Shown in pieces: positions 4,401 to 64,000 of a stretch of 64,000 bases of DNA. The notes below the pieces were generated by a model, which was given only the letters and a program-made list of their open reading frames with translations, was not told where the DNA came from and did not search any database. The stretch comes from Ophelia neglecta. Its lineage: Eukaryota. The translations under genes were made by a program, and so were the position numbers. The first letter of the stretch is position 1; every line of letters begins with the position of its first letter. The DNA lies in the NCBI GenBank assembly GCA_965285935.1, contig OZ260666.1, positions 14,632,001 through 14,696,000 on the forward strand, written 5' to 3'.

Positions 4401-7400
4401 CTAATCGCCGTTTTCGTACCATTTATAGGTCATTCGAGGTCGGTCGTGTTTCGGCTGGGAAGTGGATGTGACCATACATCTCATCTTGAAACCTTCCTGC
4501 TCGATTCGTGCTTGAACTGGTTCTCCTGTACAATCCAAAATATTCTAATTGTGTACAATGTTTTCAAAATCAGTTAATAGACTTACAATTGTATAGATAT
4601 AGTGATGAACACTACAAGGTTTCTCAGTTGTCTAAATGCTATGTATAGACGACACTAAGGTATCGATCGCCAAATTATGTTCTAATGCTTAACGAATGAA
4701 AACATCATTGCATGACAATGTCTGCTAAAAAGTAAGACTACCTACCCCATACAGAAACAGTACCGTTTGTTACCACTTGTTCCGACTGTTTACATGTGTA
4801 CACTCCTGCGTCCTGTAAGGTGACGTTTATCAAAGTAAAACCAAATAGGTCAGCACTGCGTTCAACGAACCCCTCAAAGACTTTCTGTGTAACATTGACT
4901 GAATGTTGATAAGCCGTTTTATGTATTTTATATTTGGACAAGTGGAACATTTTCAAATTAAAATTGTCTTCGCATTTCAAAGGCCGAGCAGTGTCTATAT
5001 CTAGAAAGCTCCAGCGAAGCGTGGCGTTTCCTGTTGTATAACTGCAGTTTAAGCGTCCGTCTGAAAGCGGTGGTAATAATGAGACTACATACATTTGCGA
5101 CTATGTGTTTTTTTTCTGGAAGTGAGCGTAATATATATAATAAATTTATAATTATTTAGAAACAATTGTACCCACAAGTTGGCACCGGTTATGATATACA
5201 CAAAGGCGTTTAATAGTTAACATTGCTTTTTTTGTTCAAATGTATATTTATATACCTCCAGATTGGGTGGTCCCAGCCAAATCCGGTGGGCCCTGCGTGA
5301 AATGTTCAGCCGACAAAGTCGTTTCCATTGCTTGACCTACAAAATTTTATAAGCTATACTGATACATTGCACTCGTGCTTTTCAAAATGACGTCACCTGT
5401 AGCAAAACTTTATTTTGCGACTTAGATCGGCTGTGTAAATTTGAGCGACTAGTTGATGGTTGTCGCATTGACTAGCTCGTTTTAAATGTTAATATTACAA
5501 AGCTCTAAGTTTTTTTCGCGACATGGTGCCACTATGAAAAAAAAACTCGATGGCTCAATCTTGGTGCCTATATACTAACAGAGTGGATACCTGGAATATA
5601 AACAATTTTTAGTTAGCAAGGCTAATCTTTATGTCGCTCCGACTATAACGAGCTTTACTGAGGCACTGGTCGTAGTACAAAATGGTGAATTTGTCCACCT
5701 ATGTATGTAATGATTACAGATGAATCTATTCCCAATTCACTAATGAAAAAATGGCTTTTACTTGGCTTACTCTCTGTAACGGAGCCCGTTTCAGTGAATT
5801 TTTAACTTAAAGATTGTGAGTGGATACCCGACAGACACAGCTAAACATTAAACAATTCTAGTCCATTAAATTGACCACAAATCACCAGATACCTACAGCA
5901 TCAGGCAACAAACATAAGAATAATAATTTAAGATTGATATAACATGTGATGAGTAGTATTCAAACCATTTTCCATGACGCGAGCTATAACACTAAACAGT
6001 GGGTCAGTAGTAAAGTAGAGCAGCGATAAAATATGATCAAGGGGATCCTAAGATGAACAAAGCCGTTTCATTGTGGTGAGATTATGGATAAATCTTTTAT
6101 CTCTAAAACACATGACCAGAGCAGAAGGAAGTCCCGACATACTAAATTGTGAGTGGGTTTCATATCTCGTTAATATTGTAACCGAACATTATCAGTATGA
6201 ATCAGGTTCTCATGGCGCCATGTCATATGATGAGAGTAGGTTGCCTAAAGACACTGGCTTCTTTTGCTGTCTGGTTGCTGAAATAATGGCAATAAGACCG
6301 TACTACACCAGTCTGAAAGACAGTCATCGATTGTACGTTGACTAATCCATTGAGTTTTCAAATCTTAAGAAATGGTCCACGATCTGCAATTAACTCTGTT
6401 ATTTACCATATTTTTTGAACTTTTTCTGATGATTTCACTGTGATAGCTTCGGAAAAAGGATGATATATGGGCAAAATTTGCATTAGGATCAGTGGTTTTG
6501 ATGCAAAATGGGACAATCGTTATGCATACAGTTGTCAGAATAAGAAAATATATGACACAGTATAGAGCAATACAAAGTAAACATGGTGGATTATATGAAC
6601 ACGGATGGTATGAATACTAAACCAGGTTAACGAGAGATATGGCCCCGTACAGCATTAGAAATTGCAACACTAAATGTACGCTATCTCCTTCTATTTACAC
6701 GACCTAAATACGACAGGCCTGTCGGTTGACACGTGTTATTAAGCAGGATATACAACAACAGTGTATTTATTAAGTGGATTACCAGCTGTTCATGCTGGTG
6801 AGTGGGAGATTAGAGATACTTCAATATACTCCGCGCTTCATAGTTTATATTGGGATCAAATTAAGCGGACAAATCTAGGGCAATATATTTACTTTAAAAG
6901 AATTTCAGCACATATATTATGCACACGACAATTGCATATTTTGGACTTGACATAAATGGCAAAATGTGCCGCAAAACACCTAAACTGATAAAGAGATGGC
7001 ATTGGCAAGACGCACAATGATAATGTGCCTAGTGTACTTACTTTTCGAAAGAACATTTTCACGCAGCGTAAAGAGTATCACTCCGATGAATACCAGTCCA
7101 GCAAGCGTTGACGTGATGATGAACCCAAAGGTTTTCCCCCTTATCTGACATCCTGGCCATCTTCGCATTCTGTACTCTTCCGATTCTCTTGATGGCTCGC
7201 CTGCCTCATAATCTGTACAAGGTTGGGTAGCAATCTCCAAAATGTTCAGGGGTATGGTCTCCGTGCTCATATCCTTACCCTCGATTGTGGGCAAATTGTG
7301 TTCATCACGCGATGTCCTGGACTCTTTGATCACTGTCGCTGAGCGATCAGAGTTTGGTTTAGACCGTGTTAAATGCGGATGTTCCTGCTCTTCTGAATGA

Positions 7401-8293
7401 ATATACGTAGTCCCTTTGTTCGAACAGTCAGAGGAGTCGGCAAATCTTGGCATTCTGTTTCCTGGGTCTTGGTCCAGTTTTTTTGGTGTTAGTACTGAAA
7501 AATGTACCATAGGGGAACTTTCCAATGTATGTTTACATTGTGTCTGATATTTGGATCCTTCATCAGTAGTATTAGGACAAGTGGTCTTTGCCGCTACCGA
7601 TTTTACCGCTGTGCTTTGCTGCCCATTGGTGTCCATGGAACCATCTTCAGGACCCAAGGAGCCCTTATCTTGGTCCACACCCCTCAATGCCTCCTTTGAA
7701 TACTCTCGCCTTTCCGATGAATTGATGACAAGAGTATTAGAAACCAGTCCGTCATACCTTCCTATCAATCCACTCTTTTCGTTTGACGGGTTTTCTTTGG
7801 ATCGAAGGTAGTTCTTCGGATCGTCCGATGATATAAGCCCAAGTTCCGAGATGTCAGTGTTTTCTACTTCAGCGTCCTTTCGCCCTTTGCAAGGGTCATT
7901 GGTGGTTTTCACATAAGTTTGTTCTTGGCGATCAGTGTACGCTTCATGACTACTATGTACTACGGGTCTTGGGTTGCTTACTTTGCAGAGGAGAGCAGAT
8001 GATTCCTCTTCATTTGTACAATCCTCAGGCCAACTGTTTTCTACGGGAATTTTGTTGCCCACTGTTTGTAGAGTAGGCGTAATGTTTGTTTGAGGGAATG
8101 GACCATATACAACAGTAGGTCTTTCAGCGAATACATCATACTCCTGCTCGTTTAAGATGGTCGGTGACAGTTTATCTTCAACTCTGCCTTTCTTAATGCT
8201 CATGGGTACCACTTGGTCTTCTAAAGGTGTTGGGGTTCCCGGTCGTATGCGACCTACAAGGTCTGGCAAGGAAAAACGATTCACTTTATCCAT
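4401..8293 (-). CDS. Gene B1: putative type II TM Ig-superfamily protein, ~590 aa (cytoplasmic tail, TM, stalk, 1 Ig plus half Ig, stop)
   Basis: Exons complement(8293..7042, 5336..5256, 5060..4746, 4525..4401), all GT-AG phase 1, 1773 nt in total. Start MDKVNRF is inferred. Single TM FGFIITSTLAGLVFIGVILFTL is preceded by basic residues. Ig motif FTLINVTLQDAGVYTC. The last exon stops at WYENGD*. Confidence 0.75.
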
Positions 8294-9280
8294 TTTATCG
8301 AGGGATATTTTTCTGCATAAACTAAGAAGACGTTTTCTATCTGCATTAGCAGCACAACAATAACCCGTCTGACTCACCTACTGCTCATATCGAGATATAC
8401 AATGTCAAATAAGTATGATATCCTTAACCATTTTGGTAGCATTTATTGTGTCATTTTGGTAACTGATGTAAATATATTAATTCTTGGGTTTCTCCAAAGC
8501 GTCGGCGCAACTTTTGCGATAAGCCGACACATTTGGATATAAATTATATATTTTCACCAGGCCATCATACCAAGGTTGACTCAATCCCCCGCCATTCTAG
8601 AAGAGATAACAGAATGCGTAATTATTGATAATAATTGAGCAAAATATGTGTCAACATAATAGCTAATGGGCCACACAGAAACTAATGGCCAGGTCACTGC
8701 GAACGTATGGGGTCCGACATTTTTTCGAATAACATTCTGTTTAAGTTCTAGTCGGAGTCTAGCATAGTTAGTGTTGACCTATAAATGTTCTCGTAATCTC
8801 GCAATTAGGGAGGATAGTCAAGGATGTCGGAAAAGATAGTTGGGCATGTTCAAAGAAATGTTTACTGGAGCTCCCGAATGTGACTACTGGTCCCTTCTGG
8901 AAGCTTTGGAGTTGTATTCCAGGAAAAAGCGGTTTGTAGGGAAAGGCTTATGAATCATAATGAACATATTCACTTTTAGCCAAAGTCACTGTACGTCGAA
9001 CAGAGTAATTATCTTAGAACATAGTAATTATCTCTATCGCATTATGTAGCTATGTTAAGATTAATGGACGTTTGTAGGTAAGATCTGTCAGTATTATACC
9101 CCCTTAGTATTACGATAGTAAAGCTATATGAGATAATATCTATTCGTATGGTGAATAAATTGCAATAATAAGGAGCATCCAGGCACGCGTGGCGATGTCA
9201 TGTCGTTTGTAGCACAACACGCTCTTCTAGCACTTAAAAGTTCAGATAGTGTCAAAGTACACATGTGTCGCCTACTCAGT

Positions 9281-9336
9281 GGAGCTTTCCATGTTTTCGT
9301 CATATGATAAACAAGCTTACCCGTGGAAAATTTTCC
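9281..9336. promoter_or_regulatory. NF-kB/Rel-like sites in the B/A divergent spacer
   Basis: GGAGCTTTCC (9281-9290) and the perfect palindrome GGAAAATTTTCC (9325-9336); the palindrome is retained at 48930-48941. Motif match only. Confidence 0.35.
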
Positions 9337-10280
9337 ATGATTTTAAGCTCGTTTATTATATGACCGTTCCTTGGTTACAGTAATAACCGTTGGGGAACGA
9401 AACACATGTGGACTGCGGAGAGACACCAGTAAGAAAATATTCAGTTTTTATTGATATGCATTGAAACTAAATACGCTTTATCACCTCCATATAAGCTATG
9501 AAGATAAGTCCACTTTATTTGCAGGGGGGGGGGGGGGGTGGACGAGAAATGTAATTAAAACACACATAAAACTAGCAAAGGTCTTCTTACGTTAAGCTTG
9601 ACCCAGACTAACAGGATTTTGCACGGCCAGTTGTTAGGGTTTATAAATATATATATGTCATGCTTATATTACGATAAGGAACGGTCTTATGGAAAAAGCC
9701 AGTCGATAAAACGTGACAATCACTAATTTGTACGAATGAAATATTGATGTTTATTTTTTTTCGTGAGATATAACTATCACGAAAGATAGTGTTAGTGTCC
9801 TGATTAGAAATGATTGATTTGGTAAATGTTCCAAAGGTTTATATATTGTGTACTTAGATAGGTCTAGGTACTACCATGTGGCAATTTTTGTGTGATATTA
9901 TTGTGTGTCCTTGATACTATAAACTACCATGTTTATTACCATGACTTTGCAATGTAATCAGTTTGTGGTCTGTATGTAAACTATATACCTCATTTGTGAA
10001 TACAAGCAGTTGAACCGAGCGCACTTTAATATTGACAATTAGTTCAATGACACTTATTTCACCCAGTCGGGTACCCTTATTTGATAAGCCTACTATTAAC
10101 ACAGTTTTGGTAATTCGAGGGCAATAACGATCTTCACATGACGTTGATTGTTGCTTTATCAGTCCTTATCAATGTATGGTATTTGAGTTAGCAATTTAAT
10201 GTTAGCTTACACTGTTTAATTGTACACTTCAGATACCATCTCTGTTGACTTCTGCGGATTATGTATTTAAAACTACGGTT

Positions 10281-13200
10281 ATGATGGCTCGCATGCATTT
10301 AACCTATGCGTTGGTGCACTTGCACCTGCTTGTTACATTGATCAAAGGTTAGTTAATTTCCATAGTTTCGACTTAGTTACCACATATGTCCTGCACCTCA
10401 GCTTGTTGAGCTTCTTTTCTTCCTCGTCGCTTAACATTGATCAAAGGTTAGTTAATTTCCATAGTTTCGACTTAGTTACCAAATATGTCCTGCACCTCAG
10501 CTTGTTGAGCTTCTTTTCTTCCTCGTCGAAAACAATTTTTTCTGCAGCTAAGTAGTAAAGGATTAGGTAAATTATTAGGATTCAAAAGACCAACTGCGCT
10601 CCTTTCGTTGCAGATATGTTCACTTATGAATGTTCATTGTATGACTCATTTTTGTCGATTGGTGTAGCACAACTTGAAGATGGGCTTCCTATGATATATG
10701 TTTGTGACCTATTTTGTGGGTGTAATCCCCGAGGTACTAATAAAAGAAATGTACGCCTTCCCATCTCGAAATATTGACACAAGGGTTCCGCCTGGCCTTC
10801 TCTTTCGCGGCCATAATATATTTTTGACGAAAATCGATATTCTGCATAACCCTTTGATTCTTCATGCCAATATAAAAAAATAGGGTCATTTTATGTCTCT
10901 GTATAAGGTCTAGTTCAAAAGTTATGTGTTTAACTGATATCGCTATGTCTGCGGAGTGTCCACTCCCTTTGTTTCAAACAACTTTTGTACCTAATAATAC
11001 TTCACCTGTGGACTTATACTCAATTCTAAGTTTAGGTTTTAATGAATTTGTATTATATTGAAGCCGGGACACAAATCTCACGCACCATCCATGTTTGCGA
11101 AGGCGACACAATGAAGGTCAGCTTTGATTACCCGCATGGAAGGATGGGGGAAGCTACCTCGGTGCATGTAGAGCAGATAAAACCTATAAGCAGATACATT
11201 ATATATCAAGATTGGAATGAAAAGCCAACACCTGATGATGAGAGGGCGTGGATAGTTTGGAGAAAGACAAGCACTGGTGAACAAATCGAGGTAGGAATAA
11301 ACCACATAACTCTGTCTGATGAGGGGAGTTACGTTATTGATGTTTACTCGGATGGCTATGTGGAAACATATATTTTCTCAGTAAAGGTTTTGAACAACTC
11401 TGGTGAGTAGTTTTTTAATCTAGTTTCTGCTTTTATCTAGAATAAAATATAATAATTAATAACATCTCTCCCCACTTTCCCATATTTATATACATATATA
11501 AATACCATTCTACATCCATTTGGATGAATATTTTAATAAATATTTTTTCAATATTATTTTGTCAGTTAAATCAAATTCCAATTTTGTTGCACACTTTATC
11601 ACACTCAGTCTGCCCTGACCCTAAGAACTTGAGGCATCCGACAATCTCCTACAGACAGAAACCATCCTCTATAATACGTTTATACAACAAAACGTTGGAG
11701 CTCCGTGAACCAAGCAATGTTACACTGTTAGTGGACATACCTGCAGGGCATCCTCCTGTAATATGTACAATAGCCACAGATAAGTCTCAACATACTTGCA
11801 ATGGAAAGGTCAACATGACTTTCCTGTGTGAGGCTGAGCTCTTCTTGATATCGTCGGAACAGGAAATAAGAATAACCTTACATTTTATTGCTTACCGACC
11901 AATGACTACTAAGTTAGTTGCATTCGTCCTGGGTAAGGTTAATATTTGCATTAATAAATTTCTATATAAGATTATAAGGATTGATGGTACATTTTTACAT
12001 AGATAACGTGATAGACAAACGTGCCGCTTTAAACGACAAAGACTGGGGTGGAACTAATAACATAACACCATTGAAGATGCTACATGAAATCATATATTGT
12101 AATTAACAGAACATGATCTTCTGGAAGGCACGGAAATCAGCAAAATAAAAAATGAACATGATAAACCATCACCAGCAGTATATACTGCACGGGAGACCAA
12201 GGCAGCTCAAATGACCATTGATAGCGTTCTTGTGCTTGGGGGTTTTGTTTGCTTGTTCCTTGTCATCGCCCTTACGGCAGGAGCTCTGGTGGCACACCAT
12301 AGATGGAGAAAAGAGAGAGAACAAACCAGTGTGGATCGATTCGAACCTCCACGTACCGCGGCACAGGAAGAGGTACACCCCTGTCTCACCTTTCATACGA
12401 CATTCAAATGATACTTCTACTGTTCTTAGGAACATTGTAGTATTAATTCAACACCTTAGTATTAGTTGATAAATCATTTGCAATTCACTTCCACGATTGA
12501 ATTCATCGCCAAAAAAGCATCCTATGAACTATTTGATAGTGTTGTCCAAATAGTTTTTTTATTAAGGTTTAGTTTAGTAATGAATCATCAAAATCCATAT
12601 TTCTGTGTTGAAACATGCATAAGCATACATTCAATTCAGCCTGTCGTATCTCAGACAACGTTTTACCTTGTTTTCTTTTCACCACATGTTTACCTTCTGT
12701 ATTTGGTTAGATCGAAGAACGCCAGAATCTAGTCACTAATGACATGGACAAGCCAATCGCCTCAGCAGGTGATTGTTCCGTTTCTCAAATCATGGGTTCT
12801 GTAGACTTTAATACGGTACGAATCAGACTCCACAAGTTTCTGTTTATTCATTCTTCTACCATTAAAATAGTCTTCACGCCTGCTTTTATCATGAAATCTT
12901 AAAACTTGGTAATTATAATTTGTTCTCCTATTTCCGTCTTCTTCATGTCATAGATCTTGCCAAATGAAGGATTTTCTCCTCTACACATCGCAGCTATGGC
13001 CGGAACTGTTGATGAAGTAAAGCGCCACTGTAGGGATGGTGCTGACCTAAGTGAGCTTGACCCAATGAGTCGGACTGCACTGGCTGCAGCTGCTCGCAAT
13101 GGACATATATCTATTGTGCAATTTCTCATTGAGAAAGGCGCTGATGTCAATCACCCGGGCCCAGATGGTTTTCCCCCGGTAGCCAGCGCGGCAATTAAAG

Positions 13201-13928
13201 GTCAGACAGATGTAATCACTGTGCTATGTGAAAATGGCGCTGATCTCCGAATCATGGATAAAACTGGAGAAACTGCATTACACTACCCCTCCATTAAAGG
13301 AAATGTCAAGCTTATCAGCTTACTTTTGAGCAGAGGAGCTGATTTGCAAATATTGAATAAGCATGGACAAACACCACTGGGTTCTGCCTCAGAAGAGGGT
13401 CAGTTGTTAGCTGTAAAGTATCTCATTGATAAAGGTGCCGATATCAACAGGCCAGGCTGCAGTGGCAAACCCCCATTACACTGTGCCGCCAGGAACGGGC
13501 ATATAGCAGTCATACACTATCTTTTAGATAACGGCTGTGATATACACGCTTTAGATGACCTAAGTCAAGCCCCGCTTGGAGCCGCAGCTGGCAAAGGTTT
13601 AGTCGAAATAATGCGAAGTCTCATTGGTAAAGGAGCAAGTGTAAACCACCCTGGAATGTCTGGTCAACCTCCATTACACTGCGCAGCCGCGAAAGGACAA
13701 CTAGGGGCGATACACCTTCTCATAGAAAAAGGCGCAGATGTCCACATGAAAAATAAATTTGGCCAAACGGCAGTGGAAGTTGCTGCCAGTAAAGGTTTTA
13801 TTCCATGCGTGGAAGGTCTCATTGACAAAGGGGCTGCTGTTCCCCAGCCGGAAGTTGCTAGCCAGACAGACATACTAACCACTGTTGTGTTATTGGGGGA
13901 TTGTACTGCTGTTTGGAAGAATCATTAG
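10281..13928 (+). CDS. Gene A1: type I TM receptor, signal peptide - 2 Ig-like domains - TM - 9 ankyrin repeats, ~690 aa
   Basis: Exons 10281..10347 (MMARMHLTYALVHLHLLVTLIK), 11064..11402 (V-like, ITLSDEGSY), 11609..11932, 12110..12372 (TM VLVLGGFVCLFLVIALTAGALV), 12711..12815 (phase 0/0, possibly a cassette exon) and 12954..13928 (9 ANK). Phases are 1,1,1,0,0; 2073 nt; no internal stop. Confidence 0.85.
10335..10528. repeat. Local tandem duplication (~95-bp unit, 99-bp period) including the signal-peptide exon donor
   Basis: ACATTGATCAAAGGTTAGTT...TCCTCGTCG occurs at 10335-10429 and 10434-10528. There is a single unit at ~49918-50010 in copy 2. Confidence 0.9.
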
Positions 13929-16900: not shown

Positions 16901-18628
16901 AACATCTACCAGACTAATACATACCACCCAAGAGTCAAGTAGCTTGCTCGGTATCATCCCGATTCATTAGCTACAGACAGTGAATGAAAAACGTTGCATC
17001 AAGGTGTAATTTATTTTATTTTATTAAGGCTTGAAAAATACAAAAGTATCAGTGGGAAAATACTGAGAATATGAAGCGCTAATTATATCAGTCAAGTAAA
17101 ATACATAATATACAGTTACAGTCATACAAGCAAACAGACATGTACCGGTAGATAATTGCAAAAATACGCAAAAAGTGATAAACAAAAACGCTGAAATGAA
17201 TGAATTGAATTACTCAAGATAACAATAATAATCTGTTTAATTTATTTGATAACTGTTCGAATGGTCTCGAAAAATCATGTGGCAACGCCAAGTCAAGCTA
17301 CACCATCCCACTGTTGCTTAATCGCATTTTTTACAAGCGAGGGCGAAAGATTGTAAGAACATGTAAAATATATGAAGTCGTACAGTAATCATTGAATATA
17401 AGATACGTGTCAATTCTACGAGCTTTACTTGGACTACATGAACGCAGATAATCAGATGATATATGTCATGCAAAATAGTAAATACTTTAAAAGAAAGAAA
17501 AATGGAATGGATGAAATAAGATAGGATTATAAGCATATATACTCCATGCATTCATTCATTAATATCAATAACCAGCTAAAATAAGCACGTGGTGCTATTA
17601 CCTTAGCAACGCAGCATAAGCCAGTTTAAACTAAAAGGGAACTACATTTTTTAGTCTGAATATGCAGTGATTCAAAATTTCGGATTCATTTGTTTGTAAA
17701 ATTAAATTAAAACAACTATCATGTATTAATTTTTTTTGATTATAAAAAGTTAAAATTAAATAAGCATGTATACTCTACGTTAATATTGATACAATAATAC
17801 CGATAATTAACTAAAATATGCATAGAAATTGAATGTTCTGAAATTACTTTTACTAGTTACCTATCAAAATAGACCGCTTACGCTTCAACGGTAATTACAA
17901 ATTCATTGGTTGGTAATTGTTATGACGCATTTTGGGTTGTAATGTCGAAAGTCGTTAGCAACTATGTATGAACTAAAACGCGAATATAAAATAGGGAGTG
18001 GATCATTTGCGAAATTTAGTAAATTCAAAGCTAAAAGGTTCTTGAGCATAACTTAACTAACACATTACGTAACATAGGCGGAGAACAGTTGTATATATGT
18101 ATATAAGTAAAAACTTCAAATACCCATACTTAAGCATAGCGCGCACATAATGACATACTTAGCCTTCCTAGTACTTCCTACAGACTGGGATGAAATCCAG
18201 TTGCAATTCGAAAGGTATTGCAAGCAGGAAAGTAGCGACAATGTAATGCTGTAATATTACCGAGTCGTTGTATAATATACGGAAGCCAAAGATATAAGCT
18301 AAGGAGGCAACTTAGTATCGGATACTTTGAACATGAATTGCAGATTAACCATATCCTAACCTTACGCTCAGTGCATGCCACAGCGGCAAAAAAACCGCAG
18401 CTTGCACATTGCCAAATACAGCTATATCACCATACCAAGGTAAATTACCTTACTCCACTTCCACCAAGCTTCTAAGCACAGTTTCATGCATGCTTTGGTA
18501 ATTGTGTTTTGACTCAGCAAACTAAGTTGTTAAATTGATGTGCTTTACGTGGAATTTAAGCCAATGCACAGGCGAAACAGTCTTTTATCTTTCGAGAAGT
18601 GATACCCGGTCGAAAGTTCAACCACTGT

Positions 18629-31868: not shown

Positions 31869-32076
31869 NNNNNNNNNNNNNNNNNNNNNNNNNNNNNNNN
31901 NNNNNNNNNNNNNNNNNNNNNNNNNNNNNNNNNNNNNNNNNNNNNNNNNNNNNNNNNNNNNNNNNNNNNNNNNNNNNNNNNNNNNNNNNNNNNNNNNNNN
32001 NNNNNNNNNNNNNNNNNNNNNNNNNNNNNNNNNNNNNNNNNNNNNNNNNNNNNNNNNNNNNNNNNNNNNNNNNNNN
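31869..32076. other. Assembly gap (208 N) in intron 1 of gene C
   Basis: Run of N. Confidence 1.
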
Positions 32077-46900: not shown

Positions 46901-48077
46901 TGATAAACCCAAAGGCTTTCCCCCTTATCTGACATCCTTGCCTTCTTTGCATTCTGTACTCTTCCGATTCTCTTGATGGCTCGCCTGCCTCATAATCTGT
47001 ACAAGGTTGGGTAGCAATCTCCAAAATGTTCAGGGGTATGGTCTCCGTGCTCATATCCTTACCCTCGATTGTGGGTAAATTGTGTTCATCTCGCGATGTC
47101 CTGGGCTCTTTGATCACTGTCGCTGAGCGATCAGAGTTTGGTTTAGACCGTGTTAAATGCGGATGTTCCTGCTCTTCTGAATGAATATACGTAGTCCCTT
47201 TGTTCGTACAGTCAGAGGAGTCGGCAAATCTTGGCATTCTGTTTCCTGGGTCTTGGTCCAGTTTGTTTGGTGTTAGTACTGAAAAATGTACCATAGGGGA
47301 ACTTTCCAATGTATGTTTACATTGTGTCTGATATTTGGATCCTTCATCAGTAGTATTAGGACAAGCGGTCTTTGCCGCTACCGATTTTACCGCTGTGCTT
47401 TGCTGCCCATTGGTGTCCATGGAACCATCTTCAGGACCCAAGGAGCCCTTATCTTGGTCCACACCCCTCAATGCCTCCTTTGAATACTCTCGCCTTTCCG
47501 ATGAATTGATGACAAGAGTATTAGAAACCAGTCCGTCATACCTTCCTATCAATCCACTCTTTCCCTTTGACGGGTTTTCTTTGGATCGAAGGTAGTTCTT
47601 CGGATCGTCCGATGATATAAGCCCAAGTTCCGAGATGTCAGTGTTTTCTACTTCAGCGTCCTTTCGCCCTTTGCAAGGGTCATTGGTGGTTTTCACATAA
47701 GTTTGTTCTTCGCGATCAGTGTATGCTTTATACCTACTATGTTCAACGGGTAGTGGGTTACCTTCTTTGCAGGGGAGAGCAGATGATTCCTCTCCATTTG
47801 TACAATCCTCAGGCCAACTGTTTTCTACGGGAATTTTGTTACCCACTGTTTGTAAAGTAGGCGTTATGTTTGGTTGACGGAATGGACCATCTACAACAGT
47901 AGGTCTTTCAGCGAATACATCATAATCCTGCTCGCTTAAGATGGTCGGTGACAGTATATCTTCAACTCTGCCTTTCTTAATGCTCATGGGTACCACTTGG
48001 TCTCCTAAAGGTGTTGGGGTTCCCGGTGGTCTGCGACCAACAAGGTCCGGCAAAGAGAAACGATTCAGTTTATCCAT
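43943..48077 (-). CDS. Gene B2: copy of B1 (type II Ig protein, same truncation)
   Basis: Exons complement(48077..46826, 44876..44796, 44602..44288, 44067..43943). Exon lengths and splice sites are identical to B1. Confidence 0.75.
45181..45408. mobile_element. 228-bp MITE with ~32-bp TIRs, 6-bp TSD and internal CCTAAC repeats
   Basis: Left end CGGCTTTTGATTAAATGCGGAGGCGCGGAG versus reverse-complemented right end CGGCTATTGATTAAACGCGGAGGTGCGGAG. CTAATC flanks both sides (45175-45180, 45409-45414). The empty site has one CTAATC at 5622-5627. Confidence 0.92.
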
Positions 48078-49863: not shown

Positions 49864-52800
49864 ATGATGGCTCGCATGCATTTAACCTATGCGTTGGTGC
49901 ACTTGCACCTGCTTGTTACATTGATCAAAGGTTAGTCAATTTCCATAGTTTCTACTTTACCACATATGTCCTGCACCTCAGTTTGTTGAGCTACTTATCT
50001 TCCTCATCGAAAACAATTTTTTCTAGTAAGGGATTAGGTAAATTATTAGGATTCAAAAGGGAGACCAACTGCGCTCTTTTCGTTGCAGTTTGTCGATTGG
50101 TGTAGCACAACTTGAAGATGGGCTTCCTATGATTTATGTTTGTAACCTATTTTGTGGGTGTAATCCCCGAGGTACCAATAAAAGAAATGTACGCCTTCCC
50201 ATCTCGAAATATTGACACAAGGATTCCGCCTGGCCTCCTCTTTCGCGGCCATAATTTATTTTTGACGAAAATCGATATTCTGCCTAACCCTTTGATTCCT
50301 CATGCCAATATAAAAAAATAGGGTCATTTTATGTCTCTGTATAAGGTCTAGTTAAAAAGTTATGTGTATAACGGATATCGCTATGTCTGCGGAGTGTCCA
50401 CTCCCTTTGTTTCAAACAACTTTTGTACCTAATAATACTTCACCTATGGACTTATACTCAATTCTAAGTTTAGGTTTTAATGAATTTGTATTATATTGAA
50501 GCCGGGACACAAATCTCACGCACCATCCATGTTTGCGAAGGCGACACAATGAAGGTCAGCTTTGATTACCCGCATGGAAGGATGGGGGAAGCTACCTCGG
50601 TGCATGTAGAGCAGATAAAACCTATAAGCAGATACATTATTTATCAAGATTGGAATGAAAAGCCAACACCTGATGATGAGAGGGCGTGGATAGTTTGGAG
50701 AAAGACAAGCACTGGTGAACAAATCGAGGTAGGAATAAACCACATAACTCTGTCTGATGAGGGGAGTTACGTTATTGATGTTTACTCGGATGGCTATGTG
50801 GAAACATATATTTTCTCAGTAAAGGTTTTGAACAACTCTGGTGAGTAGTTTTTTAATATAGTTTCTGCTTTTATCTAGAATAAAATATAATAATTAATAA
50901 CATCTCTCCCCCCTTTCCTATATTTATATACATATATAAATACCATTCTACATCCATTTGGATGAATATTTTAATAAATATTTATTCAATATTATTTTGT
51001 CAGTTAAATCAAATTCCAATTTTGTTGCACACTTTATCACACTCAGTCTGCCCTGACCCTAAGAACTTGAGGCATCCGACAATCTCCTACAGACAGAAAC
51101 CATCCTCTATAATACGTTTATACAACAAAACGTTGGAGCTCCGTGAACCAAGCAATGTTACACTGTTAGTGGACATACCTGCAGGGCATCCTCCTGTAAT
51201 ATGTACAATAGCCACAGATAAGTCTCAACATACTTGCAATGGAAAGGTCAACATGACTTTCCTGTGTGAGGCTGAGCTCTTCTTGATATCGTCGGAACAG
51301 GAAATAAGAATAACCTTACATTTTATTGCTTACCGACCAATGACTACTAAGTTAGTTGCATTCGTCCTGGGTAAGGTTAATATTTGCATTAATAAATTTC
51401 TATATAAGATTATAAGGATTGATGGTACATTTTTACATAGATAACGTGATAGACAAACGTGCCGCTTTAAACGACAAAGACTGGGGTGGAACTAATAACA
51501 TAACACCATTGAAGATGCTACATGAAATCATATATTGTAATTAACAGAACATGATCTTCTGGAAGGCACGGAAATCAGCAAAATAAAAAATGAACATGAT
51601 AAACCATCACCAGCAGTATATACTGCACGGGAGACCAAGGCAGCTCAAATGACCATTGATAGCGTTCTTGTGCTTGGGGGTTTTGTTTGCTTGTTCCTTG
51701 TCATCGCCCTTACGGCAGGAGCTCTGGTGGTAAACCATAGACGGAGAAAAGAGAGAGAACAAACCAGTGTGGATCGATTCGAACCTCCACGTACCGCGGC
51801 ACAGGAAGAGGTACACCCCTGTCTCACCTTTCATACGACATTCAAATGATACTTCTACTGTTCTTAGGAACATTGTAGTATTAATTCAACACCTTAGTAT
51901 TAGTTGATAAATCATTTGCAATTCACTTCCACGATTGAATTCATCGCCAAAAAAGCATCCTATGAACTATTTGATAGTGTTGTCCAAATAGTTTTTTTAT
52001 TAGGGTTTAGTTTAGTAATGAATCATCAAAATCCATATTTCTGTGTTGAAACATGCATAAGCATACATTCAATTCAGCCTGTCGTATCTCAGACAACGTT
52101 TTACCTTGTTTTCTTTTCACCACATGTTTACCTTCTGTATTTGGTTAGATCGAAGAATGCCAGAATCTAGTCACTAATGACACGGACAAGCCAATCGCCT
52201 CAGCAGGTGATTGTTCCGTTTCTCAAATCATGGGTTCTGTAGACTTTAATACGGTACGAATCAGACTCCACAAGTTTCTGTTTATTCATTCTTCTACCAT
52301 TAAAATAGTCTTCACGCCTGCTTTTATCATGAAATCTTAAAACTTGGTAATTATAATTTGTTCTCCTATTTCCGTCTTCTTCATGTCATAGATCTTGCCA
52401 AATGAAGGATTTTCTCCTCTACACATCGCAGCTATGGCCGGAACTGTTGATGAAGTAAAGCGCCACTGTAGGGATGGTGCTGACCTAAGTGAGCTTGACC
52501 CAATGAGTCGGACTGCACTGGCTGCAGCTGCTCGCAATGGACATATATCTATTGTGCAATTTCTCATTGAGAAAGGCGCTGATGTCAATCACCCGGGCCC
52601 AGATGGTTTTCCCCCGGTAGCCAGCGCGGCAATTAAAGGTCAGACAGATGTAATTACTGTGCTATGTGAAAATGGCGCTGATCTCCGAATCATGGATAAA
52701 ACTGGAGAAACTGCATTACACTACCCCTCCATTAAAGGAAATGTCAAGCTTATCAGCTTACTTTTGAGCAGAGGAGCTGATTTGCAAATATTGAATAAGC

Positions 52801-53366
52801 ATGGACAAACACCACTGGGTTCTGCCTCAGAAGAGGGTCAGTTGTTAGCTGTAAAGTATCTCATTGATAAAGGTGCCGATATCAACAGGCCAGGCTGCAG
52901 TGGCAAACCCCCATTACACTGTGCCGCCAGGAACGGGCATATAGCAGTCATACACTATCTTTTAGATAACGGCTGTGATATACACGCTTTAGATGACCTA
53001 AGTCAAGCCCCGCTTGGAGCCGCAGCTGGCAAAGGTTTAGTCGAAATAATGCGAAGTCTCATTGGTAAAGGAGCAAGTGTAAACCACCCTGGAATGTCTG
53101 GTCAACCTCCATTACACTGCGCAGCCGCGAAAGGACAACTAGGGGCGATACACCTTCTCATAGAAAAAGGCGCAGATGTCCACATGAAAAATAAATTTGG
53201 CCAAACGGCAGTGGAAGTTGCTGCCAGTAAAGGTTTTATTCCATGCGTGGAAGGTCTCATTGACAAAGGGGCTGCTGTTCCCCAGCCGGAAGTTGCTAGC
53301 CAGACAGACATACTAACCACTGTTGTGTTATTGGGGGATTGTACTGCTGTTTGGAAGAATCATTAG
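49864..53366 (+). CDS. Gene A2: copy of A1 (Ig-Ig-TM-ankyrin receptor), intact
   Basis: Exons 49864..49930, 50502..50840, 51047..51370, 51548..51810, 52149..52253 and 52392..53366. Splice sites are conserved with A1. Confidence 0.85.
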
Positions 53367-58316: not shown

Positions 58317-61300
58317 TTAAGCCAACGTGAATATGGTTTCATTTTTTTCGGTTATTGAAGAATTTGTAAATCCTTCATCGCTGACATCGGGTGAACCTAA
58401 GTAAAATATTTGTAAACAATGCTAAAAGTTAAAAAATTTATTACATTGCTTTCCTAATATAGTACTTATCTTTGAAATATATATTTTTCGTGGATTTATG
58501 TGCCAAAATATCTAATGTATCTAATGAAGAATCGTGTGCCTCTTTAACCAGTTGGTCGTCTGGTTTATATCCGGTCTGATCAATATACACTAAACAATAA
58601 TGTTTTGACAATAATATATGGATATACTTACAAATTATTTCAGGCAAAGCTGCTGTGCTGTTTGACACGTCACTCCTGACTCCAAATTCGTCTGCCAGAG
58701 ACACCAGACACATCAGCGACTCGGTACAATCAATCACAGTGTCATCTATTTGTACGCTTGTTCCGTTTGTCTCTTGTGACTGCTCTCGGGTCTTGGAACC
58801 ATTGGTGATGATCATCAGCGTAAGTTGTAATGGACTAGGCAGCTCCGAAACGCTACAATTAATCTTGTACGTTGTAGTTGGGTACACTGCTTGTACTTCA
58901 ATAACATGTATATCAATCTTCGGCTTAGGAATATCTAAAATAAAAAGGCAATAATTATTGTTTCACTAAAAATGATAGGTCATTGTCATACAAGGACAAC
59001 AACTTGATTACAACAGAGTATGGCAGACTGATTCTGTATAGTTTATCATTGTTGAATGATCGGGCTGAAAACGAATTGTAGTTATACCTACATGGTATTT
59101 CATTTGCTCAGAAAAAACACCTACTAATGAATACGTAACATGGGTAATCAGTATTTACCTTCTGGGGACATAAAGAATGCTTTACTTTGCCCAGACGAAT
59201 ACGGGGAATCAACTTCTGTGCCTTGACAGGAATAATGGGCACTGCTAGCTCTATGCCAATATTCAAGTGGTGCGGGCAAATAGTACTTGCTCCTCTCAGC
59301 CTCCACTTTCACATTGTTTCGGTACCACGAATACTGCATCCGAGGTCGCGCATTTTGTGGCTCGGATGTTGATATAACGTCACATCTCATCTTGAAGCCT
59401 ACTTGTGTTACCTTGGCTCGCTGAGGTTTCCCTAAAAAAAACAGAAAATATATGGCGGTAAATAAAATTAATCTTGTAGTCGGAAACCACCTGCTTTAGG
59501 TTTAGTTTGAATATACAATGGATCAATGAAACAACTTTGTTTAGCAATTTTCGTTCATAAAATACAGCAATAAGCCAATTTGACAATTTACGTTTTAATA
59601 TGGTAACGGATAACCAACTTTTATCAGTCACTAGCATCACAAATAATAATGAAATAATGTTTATAATAATAATAATATATCAATTTGTCACAGTATCAAT
59701 TGATATATCCTACCCCATATGAACACGGTGCCGAGGGTCATAATCTGTCCTGCCTGTTTACATGCGTACTCCCCTGCGTCTTCCATGGTGACATTAAGCA
59801 AGGTGAAGCCAAAAATGGCGGCATCTTTATCAATAAACAATCTAAATATCTTCTTCGTTTCATTTCCGGGGTCGTCAATTGCAGAATTGTGCGTCGAGAA
59901 GTGAAGCAGATGGAACATTGTATGGTTAATATTGTCCTCACATTTCAACGGACGATTGGCGTCCGCGTCGAGGAAATCCCACATCAGGGTGGCATTGTCC
60001 CCGATCTTACTGCGACTGAAGTGGCTTTCTTAAAACAAACGAGTACGAAAATATCAGTATATTCTTGGAAAAACTTCAAAACTCGCATTAGGCCAGCATG
60101 GAAAGACTAAACATTTGCTAATTATTTAAGCGAGCAAACCTAACAGGAAGTTGTTCATACTAAAAAGAAGTAGAGGACATTCGCATGACCCTCTGACCGT
60201 CATAAATCACGACGATGATATTTTAAATTACCGAGCTTTAACCACATTAAAGGTCTTTTCCTCCAATTGGTATAGAAACTTACCCTTGACCTCCACCAAG
60301 TAGGTAAAGTTACGCTCGTCTTGGCTGCACATGTAGCTCCCCGCATCTTGTTTTGTAACGTTCAACAAAACCATTGTAAACGAATCATTGATTGGAACAA
60401 CACTGTACCTCTCATCCATATCTACGGTGCCATAGTCAACGCGTGATTGGGAAACGTTGAAGATATTTTCGCCGATGTTATTGAAACACACGCTGGTATG
60501 GCTTGGATCAGTAGAATCAATTTCCCAATGGATTGAAGCATTTCTGCCAACATATGCCACTAATATGTCAAAATCTGGTTTTTCTGAAAGGTCAATAAGA
60601 TTAAATAATCAGAGTTTCGATATACATTTTAATCAAGCCATGCGCTACTGCATTTTACTGTTCAATAAGATCAAATGTGCGCTTAAGGAGTAGCATAATA
60701 ATCGACGTGAAACGACATGTAATATGCTCTACACATTTGTTTAAATTCCAGAAGCACGCTTTATATGACATTTCTTTTGAAAACATTATGTGTTTATATG
60801 TTCATTATAACATTAGGGGTAATTTCATTCGAGCTATTAAATTATTCAAGTTATGCTGCTATGACAAGAATTTCATTTGTTTGATAATTTGTTGCCAAGA
60901 AAGATGGCGGCCGGCGGATCTACAGCTTTGGCACTATTATCGGCTTTACACTAGAAATGATGATAAATTGAAAATGGGAAACGGCGAGATCCGTCCACAT
61001 TGTGTGCACATGGGGACTTGTGTCAACTAGACCATCGTACATTTCACTCGATAAAACATTGTTGTTGTTAGAAGGCGAACTTATTATTTGAAATTACTGT
61101 CAGGATGCCCACAGAAAAAAAGCTGACTAAATTAACAATATTAATAAACTGTCGGTTCGCTGAATTCTTCAGCCGTGAATATTTACACAAACACGATAGT
61201 AATTATAATTAATGTGGTTTAATTCTGCTACTTTATTAAACTTATCAGCCAGACTTTCAACTTCACTCCGTTAGATCAGTTTGCTCCTCCCCCACGTTCC

Positions 61301-64000
61301 GTTATTGCATTGTCTGAGGCACCCAATTTTTAATTTTTAAAGGATAGAAATTGCAATCTGTTAAGGAGCTATTATGTACTATTTATATCTTTCTATTTAA
61401 TCTGCTAGCATCACAATTAATGCCCAGCGAGGTGAACACAGCGAATCGCCCGAGCCAATTGAGCGCATACGTGTAATAAGGGTAACGGCATGAAATGCAT
61501 GCACTTTAAAAGTTAGAATTGTTCAAGTATTAAAGTGTTTTTTAACCTTACCTGTTACTTGACTGGAGAAGATTGTACTGTAACTGGCTGTTGTTAAAGG
61601 CTTAGCTGTGGTCATCGGATGTTCCCCTTTGGAATGAAACACAAGTATTAGTGGCCGGAAGCACATCACGTTTAACCATTATAGTAGAGTAGTAAAGTAT
61701 TGGACACTACTCTATTATTTGCTATTACAAAGACACCTAACATCATTCATATTTCCAAGCATCTTGACTTGTTCCTTAGATTGCAGCAGCAAACTTTAGC
61801 TTGCCAATTTTTGAGACATCGTTTTCAATATTTTGCCGACTAACATCAGCTGCTCTTATGGACATTCTTTCTATGCCGCTTAAAATTGAAAAAAAAACAT
61901 TGAGCGGAATGCAAAAGAGGGCTACGAACGGACGGGCCCTTTTATTCTAAACTCAATTCCTAACAAAAAGACGCATGAAAAATAATGGGTTTGAACGCCA
62001 ACATTTCTCAGCCATGTTTCTCTGTTGATGTGCAAGGGCAATTTTCTGATAATGGTCGGACTAAATTTAACTTCGACTATTTATAAGCCCAAATAGAAAT
62101 AATTGCATGAAACAATTATTCACGGAATTATACTACTAAATAAAATAATCTCTGGTAATCTCTCTGACAATCCAAAAAGGGAATAAAGTCAATTTGATAT
62201 ACCGTATAAAGCAAAATAGCCATTAGGAGCATGCTGCAAATGGCAAATAGATAAAGTAAACATGTAAAGTATTTTTAAACTTACAACTTAACACCCGAAA
62301 TTCACGTAGTATCCAGGTCAATACTACCACAACTACCACCCCGACGAGCGCTGCCGTAGCGATGTACCTCAGTAATGTCCCGTTGACCCGACAACCTCTC
62401 TTTCCACCTATGATTAGCTTTTCGTATTGGTTTGATGTCCCTTGCGCGTTTAATTCAATGCCTTCAATGCGATCGATAGGGGCTTCTTCCAAAGTTTCCA
62501 AACACACGATGTCAACATCCATGTCTGCATCCTCGATACAGGAATAGATGTGCTCGTCCGCCGAGCTACGGCTGCCGCCATTTGTTGCCCGTATGTTAGA
62601 TTTCTCTCCACGACGGGTGGTCTTGGCTGAGAGGGGCTTTTGTGGTATTTCTGTATATGGATTTCTGTTTGCCCCGCTTTTCCTATGAGGCTTACCGGGA
62701 GATGGTTCAATTCTATTCCCGCGATCGGAAGCATGTAAATGGGGTTTAGGTGCATGCTCAGAATCTGTTGGAGCCAAAGCAGCTATCTGGTGTACTAATG
62801 ATTCCCTCATATCCATTCGATCAGAGACATGAGAGGGTGAACTCTTTTGAACGGAATTTTTATGGCCATTATTTTTGGATTTTCCCTGGCTTCCTAAGTG
62901 AATTTTGACATCTCTCGGGGATGAATCCCTGGCTTTGAAATATTCTTCCTTTTTACCTAAATTTGAACAGTGTGGTTTGGGAGGAACGGCTGATTCGATG
63001 GAAGCCGAATGTGTAGAAATTGCCCAGGGGCGAGTGTCCACGGTTGTAATGTCTCTTTCCGATCCAACTGCGGTACTTTCAAATATCTGGCTAGTCTTGT
63101 TGGGTTCCTTCAGGTCCTGTAATTCGCGGTATGTAGTGGGTGTTTCTAGGATTGATTCCTTTGGGGTAGCCGTTACTTTCCTTTCTGCAATGGGGGAATT
63201 TTCTTGACGCTGACTTGGTACAAAAGTCATCTGAGAGCGAGGCACCTTTGGGAAGTGGAAATAATCCGATCTGTCATCGAGGACGTCATCATTGGCTTTA
63301 ATGTTAGCTGTAGCCCACTCGTCCGTCGTCAGACTGGCCGTGTCGGAGGACCCAGTTGAAGAACCATCCTTCACAGTAGCTATTTCATTGTTATGGCTGT
63401 ATTGGTCCTTTTCAAGCTTTACCCCGGTGTCCTCATGATGGTGAATATTGATTGGAGGAGTATCTCTGGCTTTGAGATAATTCTTGTCCAAATCTGAAGA
63501 CTTTGGCCTGGGACAGCCGGTTGATTCGGGTGGTTTGATGGCGACATGTGCATTAGTTGAATGTTCACCATTGTCATTCACCAAAATCATCTCACTACGA
63601 GGCACGTCGTTGAAATGAAAATAATCCTTTCGAGTGTCCAAAGCCGAACGTCCTTCTCCAGCGCTGCCAGAACTTTTCAGAACCTTTCTTGTTGGAATAG
63701 AACCCTTGAGACCTTGACCTTTTCCACTGATCGTGTGTTTTTCTATGATGGGTTCATTTTGCTTAGCACCACTGCCTGCTTGTTTATTCCTAATTTCAAT
63801 ATTAGGCTTTTCTGTACCTGGCGCTTGTACCAGAGTCATCTGACTGCGGGGTACATGAGGGAAATGGAAATAATCAGACCTTTCATCTGGGAAGCCATCC
63901 TCGGGTCCAATGTTAGCCGCAGAGCCGCGGTCCGTCGTCAAGCTGCCCGTGTCTGAAGACCCAGTTGAGGAGCTATTGTCCACATCGGCTATTACCAGGT
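58317..64000 (-). CDS. Gene D2: copy of D1 with an intact 4-Ig ectodomain; 5' end lies outside the window
   Basis: Exons complement(>64000..62285, 61626..61552, 60583..60284, 60028..59714, 59431..59159, 58934..58632, 58396..58317). Ig3 is open: KMRCDV...YSWYRN...HYSCQG. Confidence 0.8.

Follow-up and report, generated by a model that had tools for sequence, protein, structure and literature searches.

The locus raises the question of why genes for two kinds of immunoglobulin (Ig) protein, predicted to cross the membrane in opposite orientations, repeatedly lie head to head, and whether the neighbours encode partners. The window, the whole 64,000-nucleotide stretch of DNA that was analysed, probably contains a lineage-restricted cluster of immunoglobulin superfamily (IgSF) surface genes that evolves by tandem duplication and decay. 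The gene models were built ab initio from the window DNA alone, and their splice junctions were all GT-AG with consistent phases.

Organization and duplication of the locus

The genes were arranged in the order C'(+) B1(-) A1(+) D1(-) C(+) B2(-) A2(+) D2(-), exactly the order and strands given in a sequence-only reading of this DNA. The start codons, which that reading had placed about 2.0, 6.9, and 1.8 kb apart, were separated by ATG-to-ATG distances of 1988 (B1/A1), 6933 (D1/C), and 1787 bp (B2/A2). Self-blastn of the window also revealed a tandem duplication that had been missed, with a period of 39.5 kb and an identity of 88–99 %.

1–24308: copy 1 of the tandem unit (partner 38391–64000, self-blastn)
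38391–64000: copy 2 of the tandem unit (partner 1–24308, self-blastn)
1–444, plus strand: C', the 3' end of the downstream ankyrin (ANK) block of the preceding unit (block 3), equivalent to 38391–38834 (96.5 % nucleotide identity)
31869–32076: assembly gap of 208 N, inside intron 1 of C

The copies shared 96.4 % identity over 20.7 kb aligned, in collinear blocks of 88–98.8 %. The identity was very uneven along the unit and was lowest, at 88 %, in the B-A intergenic DNA. Since 1–24308 and 38391–64000 are copies, B1/B2, A1/A2, D1/D2, and C'/C are recent duplicates. The three divergent pairs described earlier were therefore correct in arrangement but go back to no more than two old, independent pairs, which are B-A and D-C.

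The deeper relationships proposed earlier were borne out. A and C were diverged paralogs, with 42–48 % amino acid identity in the V exon and 55–61 % across nine ANK repeats that aligned almost without gaps. B and D were likewise paralogous, with 50–55 % identity in the Ig exon and 35 % over 98 residues of juxtamembrane tail and transmembrane (TM) segment (E 3e-6). The exons described as common to these paralogs were present, namely a 67-nt signal exon in A and C (A1 10281–10347, A2 49864–49930, C 31770–31836) and a 315-nt Ig exon in B1/B2 and D1/D2. Between the old paralogs, B/D and A/C, nucleotide similarity (66–72 %) was left in exons only. The repeated [type II(-), type I(+)] layout was that expected from tandem duplication, in agreement with an ancient duplication of a two-gene unit. 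Such a unit would have duplicated once to give B-A and D-C, and the four-gene 39.5-kb block would then have duplicated recently, or two diverged haplotypes would have been laid in tandem.

A1, A2, B1, and B2 were intact, and C and D1 were disrupted by nonsense codons, a TAA in exon 3 and a TAG in the third Ig exon, respectively. ANK debris lay in the last intron of C and just downstream of its stop codon.

31770–37908, plus strand: C, the A paralog, with nine ANK repeats in E5 and the stop codon at 37906–37908
Exons of C, plus strand: E1 31770–31836, E2 32160–32483, E3 33484–33870, E4 34100–34293, E5 36943–37908
33531–33533, plus strand: in-frame TAA in C exon 3 (CAG at this position in A1 and A2)
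34620–35240, plus strand: degenerate, frame-shifted partial copy of the C ANK exon, in the last intron of C (82.8 % to 36799–37414)
37909–38834, plus strand: second ANK block immediately after the C stop codon (61 % amino acid identity to the A ANK block)

The second ANK block was initially in the frame of C and shifted by one base near 38000–38030. C' (Pfam Ank_2, 9e-43) matched this frame-shifted block and not the coding ANK exon of C, with five synonymous and four nonsynonymous differences from 38391–38834. The N run began 32 nt past the C exon-1 donor and stopped 83 nt short of the exon-2 acceptor. The exons on either side were both of phase 1 and the visible coding sequence was untouched; as the sequence is written, the gap is intronic. 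Similarity of the gap flanks to each other or to other parts of the window was sought and none was found, so the window offers no bridge.

When the two copies were compared, the A exons were far more alike than their flanks, with 7 differences in 1995 exonic nucleotides against approximately 3 % in the surrounding block, which suggests that the A coding sequence is under constraint. The ectodomain was invariant between A1 and A2, whereas 8 of 104 Ig residues differed between B1 and B2, with a pN/pS of ~0.6 that was equal in the tail and the Ig exon. No ectodomain hypervariability was observed between the two unit copies. Because the A ectodomain is invariant while B changes, the neighbours showed no covariation and no ectodomain-focused diversification.

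Predicted architecture of the type I and type II proteins

The A protein was composed of a V-set domain, a second β-sandwich, a single TM segment, and, on the cytoplasmic side, nine ankyrin repeats, the folds encoded by E2 and E3 being predicted from models.

10281–13928, plus strand: A1, type I, 669 codons (open frames, GT-AG, Pfam ANK 9e-65, AF2 and Foldseek for E2 and E3)
Exons of A1, plus strand: E1 10281–10347, E2 11064–11402, E3 11609–11932, E4 12110–12372, E5 12711–12768, E6 12970–13928
49864–53366, plus strand: A2, intact copy of A1 (7 nt and 5 amino acid differences in 1995 nt compared)
10335–10528, plus strand: 99-bp tandem duplication in A1 intron 1 (TRF, 2 copies, 98 %), repeating the exon-1 donor region

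The AlphaFold (AF2) model of A E2 (pLDDT 88.8) contained eight strands in a V-set fold with C' and C'' strands. Its best 50 Foldseek matches were all V-set domains (E ~2e-7, TM ~0.75), led by CD96 D1, CAR D1, nectin-1 D1, MPZ, and Nav β subunits, with antibody V domains also among them. Profile matches of the A/C V exon included TCR V and butyrophilin-like proteins. Exon 2 scored 18.3 bits in A and 19.7 bits in C, below the Pfam V-set gathering threshold of 26 bits, and lacked the canonical B-F disulfide with a packed Trp (the Cys-Trp-Cys 'pin'). E2 of A and C contained a single Cys (in VCEGD in A), and the F strand (GSYVIDVY in A) was free of Cys. The E3 model was an all-β sandwich (pLDDT 80.7) with weak Foldseek matches only, to RhoGDI/UNC119/MSP (E > 3e-3), and E3 gave no Pfam match to I-set or Fn3. 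The tandem 33-residue ANK repeats scored above the Pfam Ank_2 threshold, at 215.8 bits in A and 196.6 bits in C. The nearest solved sequences to the A ANK block were the membrane-binding domains of ankyrin-1/2 (E 3e-102; matches included 4rlv and 4rly).

The B and D genes encoded putative type II Ig proteins with long polar N-terminal tails.

4401–8293, minus strand: B1, type II, 563 codons plus stop (open frames, GT-AG, phases 0>1>1>0)
Exons of B1, minus strand: E1 8293–7042 (polar tail and TM), E2 5060–4746 (315-nt Ig), E3 4525–4401 (half-Ig remnant, TAG 4403–4401)
43943–48077, minus strand: B2, intact copy of B1 (E1 48077–46826, E2 44602–44288, E3 44067–43943)
18944–24837, minus strand: D1, long type II (E5 is the last exon placed; possible last exon 18708–18629)
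Exons of D1, minus strand: E1 24837–22593 (746-aa tail and TM), Ig1 20895–20596, Ig2 20340–20026, Ig3 19743–19471, E5 19246–18944
19598–19600, minus strand: in-frame TAG in the D1 Ig3 exon (AAG at this position in D2)
58632–64000, minus strand: D2, copy of D1 (Ig3 exon 59431–59159 open; ATG past the window end)

The five D2 exons seen within the window were all open. The B Ig exon matched PF00047 (Pfam ig) with 24.4 bits against a cutoff of 21.8 (E 3.5e-5), and the F-strand D-x-G-x-Y-x-C motif, as DAG.Y.C, did not vary among B1, B2, D Ig1, and D Ig2. At the sequence level, the B/D Ig exons can be assigned to the IgSF.

The opposite topologies proposed for B/D (type II) and A/C (type I) agreed with the positive-inside charges, the sequons in the Ig exons, and the lack of a hidden signal exon. 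The net charge on the N-side of the B/D TM segment was +5/+4, against 0/+1 on the other side (+5/0 for the flanks in B1). Each B/D Ig exon contained 4–5 sequons, compared with 2–3 in tails of 416–746 aa. No signal-peptide exon common to both copies was found in the B and D introns by a scan that recovered the signal exon of C and missed that of A, whose signal peptide is weakly hydrophobic. The first exons of B and D could be preceded by further upstream exons. The D tail contained four DYFHFxxVPRS repeats; DYFHFxxVPRS and KNYL[KR] were the repeated tyrosine-containing motifs of the type II tails. In motif scans, ITAM, ITIM, and ITSM motifs were absent from the B/D tails, and FIGQY (FIG[QA]Y) was absent from the tails of B1, B2, and D1.

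Each unit would consist of a type II protein, whose cytoplasmic tail is N-terminal, long, and polar and whose one or more glycosylated Ig domains are C-terminal, encoded head to head with a type I protein in which an N-terminal V-set domain and a second β-sandwich are joined by a TM helix to a nine-repeat cytoplasmic ankyrin solenoid. The CAR/nectin/CD96-like V domain of A would bind an extracellular partner and its solenoid would couple to the cytoplasm. B and D would present their Ig domains outward, with disordered, motif-bearing tails as docking sites. Binding of the A solenoid to the tail of its neighbour, or of both ectodomains to each other, is possible. The head-to-head adjacency is explained by descent alone. 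The co-duplication of neighbours, once anciently and once recently, needs no functional coupling. Given the broken C and D1, D and C may not function as a pair in this genome.

Relation to known systems

The combination, which the earlier reading had not recognised as a described family, matched no described family in protein searches, metagenome scans, and the literature searched. Ig ectodomain, one TM helix, and ankyrin solenoid were not found together among the 1.84 billion representative proteins and the literature searched. The protein searches comprised an exhaustive profile search, with the A/C V exon as its only query, and word-indexed searches, together with two metagenome scans. The word-indexed searches covered proteins of 0.55–1.75 times the query length and were run with queries other than the joined models, so that annotated full-length relatives could be missed. 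The sole relative found in these searches was one 33 %-identical fragment from the sample of another organism, with both ectodomain exons open.

Hydractinia Alr genes are clustered, tandemly duplicated IgSF membrane genes with a domain per exon and many pseudogenes (PMC9546547), and the present cluster resembled them in all of these features. Furthermore, as in Alr, the membrane-distal V-set domain of A was barely visible to Pfam and had no Cys-Trp-Cys pin, and a non-classical β-sandwich adjoined the membrane. However, Alr proteins are all type I, with I-set domains 2/3, an Fn3-like spacer, and short tails that in many members carry ITAM/ITIM motifs (PMC9546547), whereas the A/C tail is a nine-repeat ankyrin solenoid without ITAM/ITIM and nothing in Alr corresponds to the type II partner gene. 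Of the 21 matches in the exhaustive V-exon profile search, 17 were looked up by source name, and none of these was an Alr protein.

The best structural matches of A E2, CAR, nectin, CD96, and MPZ, share with A the type I topology and a membrane-distal V domain; V domains of this type make homophilic or heterophilic contacts. Their identity to A E2 was 8–16 %, and their tails are short, of PDZ or ITIM type, and without ankyrin repeats. The A ANK block was nearest to canonical ankyrins, whose solenoids recognize extended and disordered stretches in the cytoplasmic parts of membrane proteins (L1CAM/neurofascin, channels). Canonical ankyrins are soluble adaptors of 24 repeats with ZU5/UPA/death domains, whereas A has nine repeats fused to a receptor. 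Unlike in ankyrin–L1CAM recognition, the B/D tails had no FIGQY, D having its four repeats instead. A is like Notch in being a type I protein with a cytoplasmic ankyrin-repeat domain, but the EGF/LNR ectodomain, seven repeats, RAM, and PEST of Notch were not found by Pfam.

The NKR-P1/Clr and RRS1/RPS4 genes are tightly linked and encode proteins that function together, and RRS1/RPS4 are divergently transcribed. The likeness to the present locus was one of gene arrangement, including the divergent orientation of RRS1/RPS4, with no domain in common. NKR-P1 and Clr are both type II C-type lectin-like proteins, whereas only B/D are type II here and no exon contained a CTLD; RRS1 and RPS4 are cytosolic NLRs, and no NB-ARC or LRR was found by Pfam.

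Fast-evolving clustered IgSF receptor loci are already known, but both architectures here are unusual. To our knowledge, type II membrane proteins displaying Ig domains are rare. If expressed, the genes would represent a new way to wire an Ig receptor to the cytoplasm and a compact natural case for asking if receptor genes that lie head to head co-evolve. Should the source animal be colonial or symbiotic, the genes could reasonably be considered as candidates for recognition; at present they are a lead only.

Alternative explanations

The recent 39.5-kb duplication could be an assembly artefact, with haplotypes placed in tandem across the gap and B1/B2, A1/A2, and D1/D2 being alleles. The scaffold gap at 31869–32076 separates two halves whose contigs overlap in content, and a divergence of 1–12 % with many indels lies within the allelic range of highly heterozygous animals. 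However, the contig to the left of the gap by itself contained C-type sequence both upstream of B1 (an ANK block) and downstream of D1 (an exon 1), so that at least a C-B-A-D-C tandem exists whatever the join, and the uneven identity along the unit is also compatible with old tandem copies between which gene conversion was patchy. We consider this artefact somewhat unlikely. It is unlikely that each head-to-head pair forms a co-expressed two-component system for immunity or allorecognition, as receptor and co-receptor in cis or as receptor and ligand; such a role is a guess from the domain types only. The divergent arrangement was kept through two rounds of duplication, the paralogs diverged to a similar extent (V exon of A-C and Ig exon of B-D), the topologies are complementary, a gene for a solenoid of the ankyrin type, which binds disordered tails, adjoins one whose product has a long tail with repeats, and the pseudogenes and copy-number change resemble invertebrate histocompatibility clusters (PMC9546547). 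Against this, there are just two independent pairs, and neighbouring genes can duplicate together with no functional coupling between them. In addition, C is disrupted and D1 truncated, the A ectodomain is invariant while B changes at a pN/pS that is equal in its Ig exon and its tail, conservation within the unit is lowest in the B-A intergenic DNA, and known immune signalling motifs are absent. A more specific form, judged quite unlikely, is an undescribed two-component receptor in which the A solenoid would clamp the DYFHFxxVPRS and KNYL[KR] motifs in the disordered tail of the type II partner. The resulting opposite-topology heteromer would pair its ectodomains for self/non-self or partner recognition, with histocompatibility-like unit duplication and pseudogenisation.

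Very unlikely is a division of B and D into a stand-alone gene for a tail-anchored protein (the tail and TM exon) and a separate gene for a secreted protein (the Ig exons). The unspliced first exon does stop 23–24 codons past the donor, ~30 past the TM segment, in both B and D. However, a consensus GTAAGT donor of phase 1 lay at the homologous position right after the TM segment in both genes and fits the phase-1 Ig exons, and the scan that recovered the real signal exon of C found none common to both copies in either intron. That the whole cluster consists of decaying, unexpressed gene relics is highly improbable. Such relics would fit the nonsense codons of C and D1, the debris of ANK exons, and the lack of homologs in protein databases, but A1/A2 and B1/B2 keep open frames of 669 and 563 codons and their splice sites are intact, the A exons are far more alike than the flanking DNA, and the 33 % relative in another organism keeps both ectodomain exons open.

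Gene models and the tandem unit

The window had a GC content of about 0.38 and contained split genes with GT-AG introns, which gave it a eukaryotic look. There was no sign of a human or vertebrate source, and the closest database proteins were no more than 39 % identical. All gene models were ab initio, and every junction was GT-AG with consistent phases. The type I genes, A and C, were composed of a predicted V-set exon, a second β-sandwich exon (E3), a transmembrane (TM) segment and nine cytoplasmic ankyrin (ANK) repeats, and the type II genes, B and D, of a long polar N-terminal tail, a TM segment and one or more C-terminal Ig exons. A1 had six exons and 669 codons, and B1 had three exons and 563 codons.

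Predicted exons and genes (window coordinates, strand, description)
10281-10347, +, A1 exon 1 (67 nt), signal exon
11064-11402, +, A1 exon 2 (339 nt)
11609-11932, +, A1 exon 3 (324 nt)
12110-12372, +, A1 exon 4, stalk and TM
12711-12768, +, A1 exon 5
12970-13928, +, A1 exon 6, nine ANK repeats and stop
49864-53366, +, A2, structure identical to A1
8293-7042, -, B1 exon 1, polar tail then TM, donor A/GTAAGT
5060-4746, -, B1 exon 2 (315 nt), Ig
4525-4401, -, B1 exon 3, stop
48077-43943, -, B2, same structure as B1
24837-22593, -, D1 exon 1, 746-residue tail and TM, donor T/GTAAGT at a position homologous to the B donor
20895-20596, -, D1 Ig1
20340-20026, -, D1 Ig2 (315 nt)
19743-19471, -, D1 Ig3
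19246-18944, -, D1 exon 5, ending in phase 1
start codon beyond position 64000, -, D2
31770-31836, +, C exon 1 (67 nt), signal exon
32160-32483, +, C exon 2
33484-33870, +, C exon 3
34100-34293, +, C exon 4
36943-37908, +, C exon 5

Since D1 exon 5 still ended in phase 1, at least one more 3′ exon is needed, for which 18708-18629 is a candidate. The ATG-to-ATG distances of the divergent pairs B1/A1, D1/C and B2/A2 were 1988, 6933 and 1787 bp, in agreement with an earlier sequence-only reading that had proposed a paired immune or allorecognition system from these head-to-head genes. Rfam, tRNA and Pfam scans of the intergenic ORFs in the window found no further genes and no mobile elements. In A1 intron 1, a tandem duplication of 99 bp (10335-10528) repeated the exon-1 donor region, which was single copy in A2, and a TA-rich microsatellite was located in C intron 2 (~32520-32720).

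When the window was compared with itself, 1-24308 and 38391-64000 aligned as a series of collinear blocks that were 88.2-98.8 % identical. Across 20.7 kb of aligned sequence the two unit copies were 96.4 % identical, and the repeat period was about 39.5 kb. B1/B2, A1/A2, D1/D2 and C′/C are therefore recent copies, and the number of independent repeats had been overstated in the sequence-only reading. The non-redundant content is a single unit of four genes, B(-) A(+) D(-) C(+). The segment 24309-38390 seemed to be single copy because its partners would fall outside the window. The identity between the units was very uneven, from 88 % in the B-A intergenic region (8971-9943) to 98.8 % across D (18550-24308), which suggests patchy gene conversion or differing coalescence times.

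The sole N run in the window (31869-32076, 208 N) began 32 nt past the end of C exon 1 (donor ACG/GTAAGA), and the start of C exon 2 was preceded by a pyrimidine-rich tract and AG. As both junctions were in phase 1, as in A, the gap as written was located within intron 1 and interrupted no visible coding sequence. Comparison of the gap flanks with each other, with A intron 1 and with the rest of the window gave no common sequence, and thus the C signal exon was linked to the remaining C exons only via the scaffold join. Because the contigs on the left and right of the gap overlapped in content, the units may be divergent haplotypes placed in tandem. However, in the left contig alone B1 was preceded by a C-type ANK block and D1 was followed by a C-type exon 1, so that some of the tandem structure is real regardless of the join.

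Predicted domains of the type I and type II proteins

The ANK repeats were assigned unambiguously, with Pfam E values of 9e-65 in A and 8e-59 in C. The nearest sequences to the nine 33-residue repeats of A were the membrane-binding domains of ankyrin-1/2 (E 3e-102). Exon 2 of A and C fell under the Pfam V-set cutoff, and its profile matched TCR V and butyrophilin-like V domains. The AlphaFold2 model of A exon 2 had a pLDDT of 88.8, and its best Foldseek matches were the D1 domains of CD96, CAR, nectin-1, MPZ and Nav beta subunits (E about 2e-7, TM about 0.75). The profile matches and the predicted structure support a V-set domain, which was without the canonical disulfide. Exon 3 of A had no Pfam match and was modelled as an all-β sandwich (pLDDT 80.7, with two of the five models below 50), with weak structural matches to generic Ig-like sandwiches.

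The B Ig exon was above the Pfam ig cutoff, and the DAG.Y.C motif was kept in all B and D Ig exons. The TM flanks of B and D had a net charge of +5/+4 on the N-side and 0/+1 on the C-side. Each Ig exon contained four or five N-glycosylation sequons, whereas the whole tails of 416-746 residues contained two or three. No signal-peptide exon common to both copies was found in the first intron. The charge bias, the sequons and the lack of a shared signal exon there together support the type II orientation. The tails were polar, with no match to a Pfam family and no ITAM, ITIM, ITSM or FIGQY motif. The D tail contained four copies of R[KS]DYFHFxxVPRS[EQ] and three of GSSTGSSDxxSLTTDxW, and it had in common with B only a KNYL[KR] motif and a 98-residue stretch made up of the TM segment and the residues adjoining it (35 %, E 3e-6).

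Duplication and decay within the unit

All exon types were common to A and C, with 42-48 % identity in the V exon and 55-61 % in the ANK repeats. Common to B and D were the TM region, an Ig exon of 315 nt (50-55 %) and a half-Ig exon. This layout is what a [type II(-), type I(+)] unit would give when copied in tandem, so that the old unit duplication proposed earlier is a reasonable inference. This was one event. Between the two pairs, nucleotide similarity was limited to exons (66-72 %), and no residual non-coding similarity that could date the duplication or reveal shared regulatory DNA was found. An inverted-duplication origin, in which the V exon of A and C would be related to the Ig exon of B and D, was rejected (E 0.17).

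Two nonsense codons had escaped the sequence-only reading. Read from the acceptor that is the homologue of the one in A, C exon 3 contained a TAA (33531-33533) in place of the CAG present in A1 and A2. The Ig3 exon of D1 contained TAG at 19598-19600, where D2 has AAG and reads through. The substitutions between D1 and D2, whose block is 98.8 % identical elsewhere, were bunched in the latter half of the Ig3 exon (19560-19612 versus 59248-59300), with TAG and 'QEAGNN' in D1 versus AAG and 'HRASSA' in D2. Either a patch of conversion or a local hotspot could account for this cluster.

Degenerate, frame-shifted ANK exon remnants were located in the last intron of C at 34620-35240 and about 36100-36700, and indicate that exons here were repeatedly duplicated and then decayed. 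Directly after the C stop, a second complete ANK block (37909-38834) continued in the same frame up to a one-base slip near 38000-38030. C′, the 3′ end of an ANK block at the window edge (1-444), matched this second block and not the coding ANK exon of C. Between the two unit copies this block had five synonymous and four non-synonymous differences, a pN/pS of about 0.25 on small counts. It may still be constrained, one possibility being use as an alternative terminal exon.

The last exon of B corresponded to the first 39 residues of the D Ig3 exon (56 % identity, E 1e-16). Its stop was common to B1 and B2, and the copies diverged past it. From these features B looks like a shortened D. An indel of ~160 bp was located directly 3′ of the B stop (4393/4394 versus 43775/43936), and B1 and B2 were unalignable just downstream.

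Possible pairing and parallels with known receptor systems

The two unit copies were compared exon by exon, which, as two copies are no population sample, gives weak evidence. Of 1995 exonic positions, 7 differed between A1 and A2; the protein was unchanged in the V exon, E3 and the ANK repeats, within a block about 3 % diverged. This similarity points to constraint or recent homogenisation. B1 and B2 had a pS of 0.05-0.06 and a pN of 0.033-0.037, with a pN/pS of about 0.6 for tail and Ig exon alike. D1 and D2 were about 1 % different. With A near-invariant, and B more changed but at an equal pN/pS in tail and Ig exon, the two copies had neither an ectodomain-focused excess of replacements nor covariation between neighbours. 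Within the unit, conservation was lowest in the B-A intergenic DNA (88 %). The observation of head-to-head genes was real and carefully made. It is unlikely that they form a functional pair, and their co-expression and a role in immunity or allorecognition are hypotheses.

The locus probably behaves as do other IgSF receptor families that are clustered and evolve by birth and death. Among described systems, the Hydractinia Alr family (PMC9546547) comes closest; it shares one domain per exon, many pseudogenes, a pin-less V-set D1 barely detected by Pfam and a non-classical membrane-proximal sandwich. In contrast to the ITAM/ITIM tails of Alr, the tails here were ankyrin solenoids, and a type II partner gene was present. 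No I-set or Fn3 domains were detected in the window genes, and no sequence link to Alr emerged among the V-exon profile matches whose names were looked up. The resemblance to NKR-P1/Clr and RRS1/RPS4 was limited to gene arrangement.

Both architectures are novel variants inside an already known kind of locus. Full-text searches turned up neither an Ig-TM-ankyrin receptor nor a class of type II Ig receptors, in line with the earlier statement that no described family was recognised. The spliced models were queried exon by exon, and the word-indexed searches covered proteins of 0.55-1.75 times the query length. The D tail exon had zero matches in a collection of 5.8 billion proteins, and a search with an alignment of the B/D Ig exons also gave none. 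The A ANK exon matched generic ankyrin proteins only (<=39 % identity), many of them bacterial, and these therefore gave no taxonomic hint. Metagenome contigs were scanned twice for loci with flanking sequence, as a sign of linkage elsewhere, and none was found. The A/C V-exon profile had 21 matches among 1.84 billion representatives. Those whose names were looked up were generic vertebrate or cnidarian multi-Ig proteins, with the exception of P0006, a 143-aa ORF 33 % identical to the A V exon on a 1141-bp Logan contig (L001) of run ERR14113986. This contig contained a V-like exon (79-510) followed by an E3-like exon (733-1044), in the same arrangement as in A, and the two-domain ectodomain thus occurs in at least one other sampled organism.
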